From Mizuhopecten yessoensis (Eukaryota), in contig NW_018403528.1 in NCBI RefSeq assembly GCF_002113885.1, positions 596,433 through 660,432 on the forward strand: DNA of 64,000 nucleotides, given 5' to 3'. Below the pieces are notes generated by a model. It worked only from the letters and a program-made list of their open reading frames with translations. It ran no database searches and had not been told where the DNA came from. This document shows positions 34,856-42,154 of this stretch, piece after piece. Position 1 is the first letter of the stretch, and every line of letters starts with the position of its first letter. The position numbers and the translations under genes were made by a program.

Positions 34856-42154
<7,299 letters not shown>

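Follow-up and report, generated by a model that had tools for sequence, protein, structure and literature searches.

A candidate alternative terminal exon within intron 4 of the canonical calmodulin gene in the scallop Mizuhopecten yessoensis

The calmodulin gene and the contents of its last intron

The stretch of DNA analysed here, hereafter the window, comprises 64,000 nucleotides of contig NW_018403528.1 of the scallop Mizuhopecten yessoensis. On its plus strand lies the canonical calmodulin gene with the five-exon structure of molluscs, the first exon being a probable assignment:

34856 to 34858, plus strand: probable end of exon 1, consisting of the start codon ATG followed by a gtaagt donor
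36883 to 36913, plus strand: exon 2 (31 nt, ending with an additional G), from its translation and splice sites
37370 to 37513, plus strand: exon 3 (144 nt; EFKEAF...EVDAD and an additional G), read from the sequence and matched by tblastn of OWF56430.1
38932 to 39174, plus strand: exon 4 (243 nt; GNGTIDF...GQVNYE and an additional G), with the phase-1 donor G/gtgcgt, read directly
42126 to 42154, plus strand: coding part of the canonical terminal exon, (E)FVTMMTSK and the stop codon TAA, read directly
42727 to 42732, plus strand: AATAAA, 573 nt after the stop codon, the probable poly(A) signal of the canonical 3' UTR

The ATG/gtaagt ending at 34858 is the sole ATG/GTRAG site between 27 and 36.9 kb, and in mollusc calmodulin genes exon 1 carries the start codon only (PMC6171432). 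Exon 4 closes at 39174 with CAA GTC AAT TAT GAA G/gtgcgt, in phase 1. Past the canonical acceptor, ttttgcag, the sequence from 42126 reads (G)AG TTT GTG ACG ATG ATG ACC TCA AAG TAA; the stop codon of the tail EFVTMMTSK occupies 42152-42154, and the canonical calmodulin sequence is 149 residues long. The translations of exons 2 to 4 are present unchanged in deposited calmodulins, the tail encoded by the gene is EFVTMMTSK, and the product is identical or nearly identical to invertebrate calmodulin across all four EF-hands. Likewise, the five-exon layout, with its intron positions and phases and an uninterrupted exon 4, is that of abalone and ascidian calmodulin genes.

The deposited protein OWF56430.1 ("Calmodulin [Mizuhopecten yessoensis]", 181 aa; P0030) has exon translations identical to those of the window. 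At its 3' end, the deposited model passes from exon 4 to an exon at 41128-41183 and from there to one at 42752-42821, just past the probable canonical AATAAA; all of these sites are GT-AG, and the true terminal exon of the gene is skipped. This 3' structure looks like an ab initio artefact, the coding part of the last exon being tiny (29 nt).

Intron 4 spans 2,951 nt and holds the candidate exon to which this study is devoted, together with the signals that may belong to it:

40834 to 40845, plus strand: acceptor of the candidate exon, tttttctttcag, read directly
40846 to 40868, plus strand: coding part of the candidate alternative terminal exon, (E)FKSMML and the stop codon TGA, from direct reading, a pattern scan and an alignment with paralogues
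40965 to 40970, plus strand: GTAAGG, a possible donor by its resemblance to the consensus, which would close a 119-nt stop-bearing cassette exon at 40846-40964
41259 to 41264, plus strand: ATTAAA, 391 nt downstream of the alternative stop codon, from a scan for hexamers
41286 to 41304, plus strand: a GU/U-rich stretch, ttttgacgtgtaggttttt, which by its resemblance to the general layout may be the downstream element of a poly(A) site at the ATTAAA

The first-pass annotation of this DNA had described a strong acceptor in intron 4, followed in phase by E-F-K-S-M-M-L-stop, and had placed the canonical tail 1.28 kb farther downstream. Both statements are borne out by direct reading of 40834-40868, where the carried-over G is followed from 40846 by AA TTT AAA TCA ATG ATG CTA TGA, i.e. 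E F K S M M L and a stop codon at 40866-40868. The candidate begins 1,672 nt past exon 4 and 1,280 nt before the canonical exon at 42126. The residue changes are also those originally listed, namely V142K, T143S, T146L and the loss of the last two residues. The acceptor is in phase, lies within the last intron as befits an alternative last exon, and is preceded by a pyrimidine tract; among the 136 AG dinucleotides of intron 4 it is the only one with at least 15 pyrimidines in the 20 upstream positions. In the scallop genome assembly (987,588,634 bases in 82,659 contigs), the 521-nt region around the candidate exon is single copy, and within 10 kb of the candidate no conserved gene was found.

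Elsewhere in the window, at 53095-54390 on the minus strand, lies a neighbouring calmodulin-like gene, whose last helix (EFAKMMEGG...) is continued in the same open frame by a repetitive K/S/D-rich tail of about 420 residues.

Chance resemblance and homology of the candidate exon

A short open frame resembling the calmodulin tail might follow an AG of an AT-rich intron by chance, and by a plain measure of identity such frames are common: when intron 4 was shuffled 5,000 times with a second-order Markov model, 22% of the shuffled introns held, after some AG, at least four of ten residues identical to the canonical tail. The signal must therefore sit in the specific F, M and M positions. Indeed, the pattern EF..MM, in phase after any AG, appeared in just 0.12% of the same shuffles, and over about 1.05 Mb of other loci, read on both strands, it matched only true calmodulin-family coding sequence, that is, with zero spurious matches. 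In addition, the candidate coincides with the one strong pyrimidine tract of the intron. The pattern was chosen with hindsight, and very many windows fall under the scan; a chance origin is practically excluded, the small residue of doubt being owed to this later choice of pattern.

The first-pass annotation had proposed a duplicated terminal exon; this part of its claim is upheld, against a chance frame, by the statistics above and by a comparison with 20 scallop paralogues, and on the evidence of its sequence the candidate is a genuine homologue of calmodulin-type terminal exons. The candidate and canonical exons share 13 of 23 nucleotides, as expected of homologues that arose by tandem exon duplication. 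All nine nucleotides in the codons of F141, M144 and M145 are the same in both exons, while of the remaining 14 aligned positions four match, close to what random sequence would give. These three residues belong to the C-lobe pocket, where the methionines contact targets. Selection on the pocket residues would fit such a distribution, and uniform neutral decay would not, yet the pattern could in part reflect how the candidate was noticed.

In blastn searches with 200-400 nt on either side, homology between the flanks of the candidate and those of the canonical or any paralogue terminal exon was not found, so that the duplication would be old or the candidate of another origin. One such origin, from the paralogue terminal exon EFSMML... 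(contig C201, position 845979), was considered and rejected, for the two have in common only a 9-mer, which is not significant.

Calmodulin-like genes are greatly expanded in the scallop: at least 88 exon-4-like matches are found in the genome, many of the genes stand in tandem arrays (contigs C5595, C201 and C5594), and the copies at 292-392 kb of C5595 are 94-99% identical to calmodulin in exon 4. For each of the 20 paralogues compared, the 8 kb downstream of exon 4 were covered. A phase-1 donor after N-Y-E/D, as in the canonical gene, is present in 18 of them, and the candidate falls in register with their terminal exons, but only across its pyrimidine tract and coding sequence. Across the 21 calmodulin-family genes scanned, two strict EF..MM terminal exons occur in the canonical gene alone; the paralogues have one each, and two of them have a looser second candidate (DFMGYTTDLLTQIK-stop on contig C3533 and EFPTVMMAR-stop on contig C5595). 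V occupies position 142 in 16 of the 19 terminal exons of paralogues that were read, with L, S or T in the remaining three; the K of the candidate is unprecedented among the scallop paralogues compared.

As for the paralogue on C5595 (positions 369550-378289, minus strand; L036), its in-phase EFPTVMMAR-stop lies at +2569 after exon 4, behind a good pyrimidine tract and 2 kb past the regular EFVKMMTSR-stop exon of the same gene. To judge from its sequence, this too may be a terminal exon, alternative or relic.

Alternative last exon, relic or cassette

The reading preferred here, to which I would give about an even chance, is that the canonical calmodulin gene uses 40846-40868 as a proximal alternative 3'-terminal exon. 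According to this proposal, the terminal exon of calmodulin would have been duplicated, and the copy would have diverged and been kept inside intron 4. Splicing of 39174 to 40846 would replace EFVTMMTSK by EFKSMML and yield a calmodulin of 147 residues, in which F141, M144 and M145 would be kept, V142K, T143S and T146L introduced, and residues 147-148 gone. The alternative transcript would end about 400 nt later, at the ATTAAA of 41259 and its GU-rich element. The choice of isoform would then be a matter of competition: either the proximal acceptor is used and the transcript is cleaved there, or that acceptor is passed over in favour of the distal one at 42126. From splicing and transcript end to protein production and any functional difference, every property of the 147-residue form is a prediction from the gene's layout.

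The ATTAAA had been put forward in the first-pass annotation as a possible signal. It is present, it is followed by the GU/U-rich stretch ttttgacgtgtaggttttt, and the two stand at a 3' UTR length typical of mollusc calmodulin mRNAs, an abalone calmodulin mRNA having an ATTAAA signal and a 3' UTR of 384 nt (PMC6171432). With this layout, typical of cleavage sites, a poly(A) site is plausible. The 1.26 kb after the candidate TGA contain this one canonical hexamer and no AATAAA, against about 3.5 canonical hexamers expected from base composition by our own estimate; the ATTAAA is therefore permissive and not positive evidence.

This scarcity of hexamers would also suit an unused pseudo-exon, a doubtful but serious alternative. 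The candidate would then be an ancestral duplicate, of a kind still active in the oyster and in the annelid Owenia (see below), which lost its function in the scallop lineage; it would go unspliced, or be spliced at the level of noise, and its intactness would be residual. Its flanks without homology are in keeping with such a fate, as are V142K and the shortened tail, which depart from every functional terminal exon compared and could mark a degenerating exon. Along the same line, a clearly degenerate EFV... copy at 40533 implies that decayed terminal-exon copies may exist in intron 4. On the other hand, a relic would hardly be expected to own the best acceptor of the intron, nor to keep its three pocket codons intact next to positions at random-level identity, where uniform neutral decay would have left a different picture. 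Moreover, were a strong acceptor ahead of the essential canonical one both harmful and useless, its loss would be expected.

The copy at 40533 lies 313 nt upstream of the candidate, where another AG, with a weak pyrimidine tract before it, is followed in phase by E-F-V (AATTTGT..., then VICKVKI...). It may be a decayed extra terminal exon or a product of chance (about 4%, by a rough estimate).

A further reading, and a rather improbable one, makes the sequence a stop-bearing cassette (poison) exon, which would use the 40846 acceptor and the GTAAGG donor at 40965 and be spliced, with its 119 nt, to 42126. The premature TGA would stand 96 nt ahead of the final junction; nonsense-mediated decay would remove the transcript and thereby tune calmodulin output, or else the transcript would give a low level of the same 147-residue protein. 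A consensus-like donor 119 nt past the acceptor makes an exon of typical internal size, which could be defined with no need of a poly(A) site, and downstream poly(A) hexamers are, as stated, scarce. Yet the exonic side of that donor (ATT/GTAAGG) is weak, a pure poison exon would have no use for the kept F..MM codons, and each of the precedents found is a terminal exon, none of them a cassette.

In 14 probable RNA runs from at least seven studies, 79-85% of the sampled words of 38800-43500 are present, about as in DNA runs; since the intron is included in these words, intronic RNA (pre-mRNA) must be abundant. Such abundance suits a gene of very high expression and is uninformative on junctions. 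None of 310 database proteins ends in KSMML, an absence that weighs little because clustering at 90% identity would hide such an isoform.

Variant terminal exons in other protostome calmodulin genes

Calmodulin is the textbook case of an invariant protein, and in animals its variation is normally ascribed to separate genes or to calmodulin-like paralogues. Isoforms already in the databases contradict, as far as genome annotation goes, the premise of the first-pass annotation that calmodulin usually diversifies through gene duplication rather than splicing. The main new result of this work is that other protostome calmodulin genes are annotated with the layout seen in the scallop, in which a variant terminal exon lies proximal to the canonical one. 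A search of the accessible literature for calmodulin splice variants of this kind, their isoform names or the candidate peptide returned no description of them.

A case in point is the canonical gene of the annelid Owenia fusiformis, whose deposited isoforms end in EFVTMMTSK and EFIKMMMSK (CAH1793151.1/CAH1793152.1 and CAH1793153.1). At this locus (L056) exon 4 ends at 29672, the proximal EFIKMMMSK-stop lies at 29965 and the distal EFVTMMTSK-stop at 38598. As in the scallop, the last intron is in phase 1 and contains the variant terminal exon, with the canonical EFVTMMTSK exon distal to it. The Owenia variant has the full nine residues with conservative changes and stands 293 nt after exon 4, whereas the scallop candidate, with its truncated tail and V142K, begins 1,672 nt after exon 4; position 142 is I in the proximal exon of Owenia and V in its distal one, as it is in the oyster. 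Upstream of the calmodulin exons, yet within the range annotated for the Owenia gene, there is also (at 7500-8765) a separate calmodulin-like gene of 135 residues with the tail EFVKMMMSKT.

Closer to the scallop, the oyster Crassostrea gigas has two predicted products, calmodulin-beta isoform X1 (XP_019925473.1) and calmodulin isoform X2 (XP_019925474.1), which have in common a unique N-terminal extension of 74 residues and differ in a single residue, EFVAMMTSK against EFVTMMTSK. Since both isoforms are predictions on one assembly, the natural reading is that they derive from two terminal exons, the order of which we infer from the isoforms. Here, then, is a bivalve gene whose two predicted products differ only within the nine-residue terminal exon, although, unlike the scallop candidate, by one conservative change (T143A) and with equal length.

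In the aphid Myzus persicae, calmodulin-alpha isoform X1 (P0042) likewise involves a proximal alternative terminal exon in the canonical gene. The exon ending in NYE closes at 11785, the proximal DFHTLARTIF... begins at 13762 (1,977 nt farther on) and the canonical EFVTMMTSK-stop at 14424 (2,639 nt after the NYE exon). Its alternative tail, of about 40 residues and with no F..MM pattern, differs from the scallop candidate; a similar tail occurs in Parthenolecanium corni (P0039).

Bivalves have, in addition, a calmodulin-A-like or neo-calmodulin-like gene, about 94% identical to calmodulin, with a proximal DFM.Y... exon and a distal EFVTMMT(A/I)K exon. The proximal exon is annotated in Mytilus californianus (P0063) and Mercenaria mercenaria (P0056). 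Its scallop counterpart is unannotated and lies on contig C3533, in a gene at 163453-172192 (L037) with the sequence DLDGDGMVNYE: the DFMGYTTDLLTQIK-stop is found 3,011 nt after exon 4, and a canonical-type exon at 5,586 nt. DFMGYTTDLLTQIK corresponds to the alternative tails annotated for Mytilus californianus (DFMEYARTILSRKTKR) and for Mercenaria (DFMVYTSKLLTANREQTENLLP), so that the DFM.Y... exon is present across three bivalve orders. Like the canonical gene with its candidate, this gene has an in-phase proximal terminal exon ahead of a canonical-type exon; it is, however, a paralogue, and its alternative tail (DFM.Y...LL...) is longer than EFKSMML and shows no relation to it in sequence.

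The mussel tail DFMEYARTIL... (P0063; L053) and the aphid tail DFHTLARTIF... (P0042; L058) have D-F-x-x-x-A-R-T-I in common, a likeness in sequence which hints that a DF-type terminal exon may be older than the split between bivalves and insects. Two further sequences were set aside: the Logan contig L052, carrying P0048, was dropped from the comparison as that of an unrelated invertebrate, and the Mytilus galloprovincialis locus L055 is a paralogue in which a first scan showed no terminal exon.

Taken at the level of sequence and annotation, these cases suggest that calmodulin genes of protostomes repeatedly carry a proximal variant terminal exon, as in the annelid, the aphid and, by inference, the oyster. 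The novelty of the scallop exon is limited accordingly, such exons being annotated already in these databases. V142K and the shortened tail, as predicted, are unusual for the calmodulin family, and it is this non-conservative change and the shorter helix that set the scallop version apart from its precedents. If the exon is used, a single gene would encode the canonical sensor and, besides it, a form whose C-lobe helix is changed but whose target-contacting methionines are kept. The practical value of the observation is modest, and RefSeq may already list the 147-residue isoform.

It may be speculated, quite tentatively, that the last helix of calmodulin is a regulated, alternatively spliced module across protostomes, of which scallop, annelid, oyster and aphid would be instances of one old and undescribed system; the scallop form, with its V142K and truncated helix H, would then differ in target or Ca2+ behaviour.

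In the abalone Haliotis discus hannai, four canonical calmodulin genes, each with five exons and four introns, vary mostly in exons 2, 4 and 5, and diversity was ascribed to the four separate genes, splice variants being explicitly excluded (PMC6171432). The scallop gene has the same five-exon structure as this abalone family, with the start codon alone in exon 1; the diversity of the abalone lies in separate genes, unlike that of the scallop candidate, which would lie within one.
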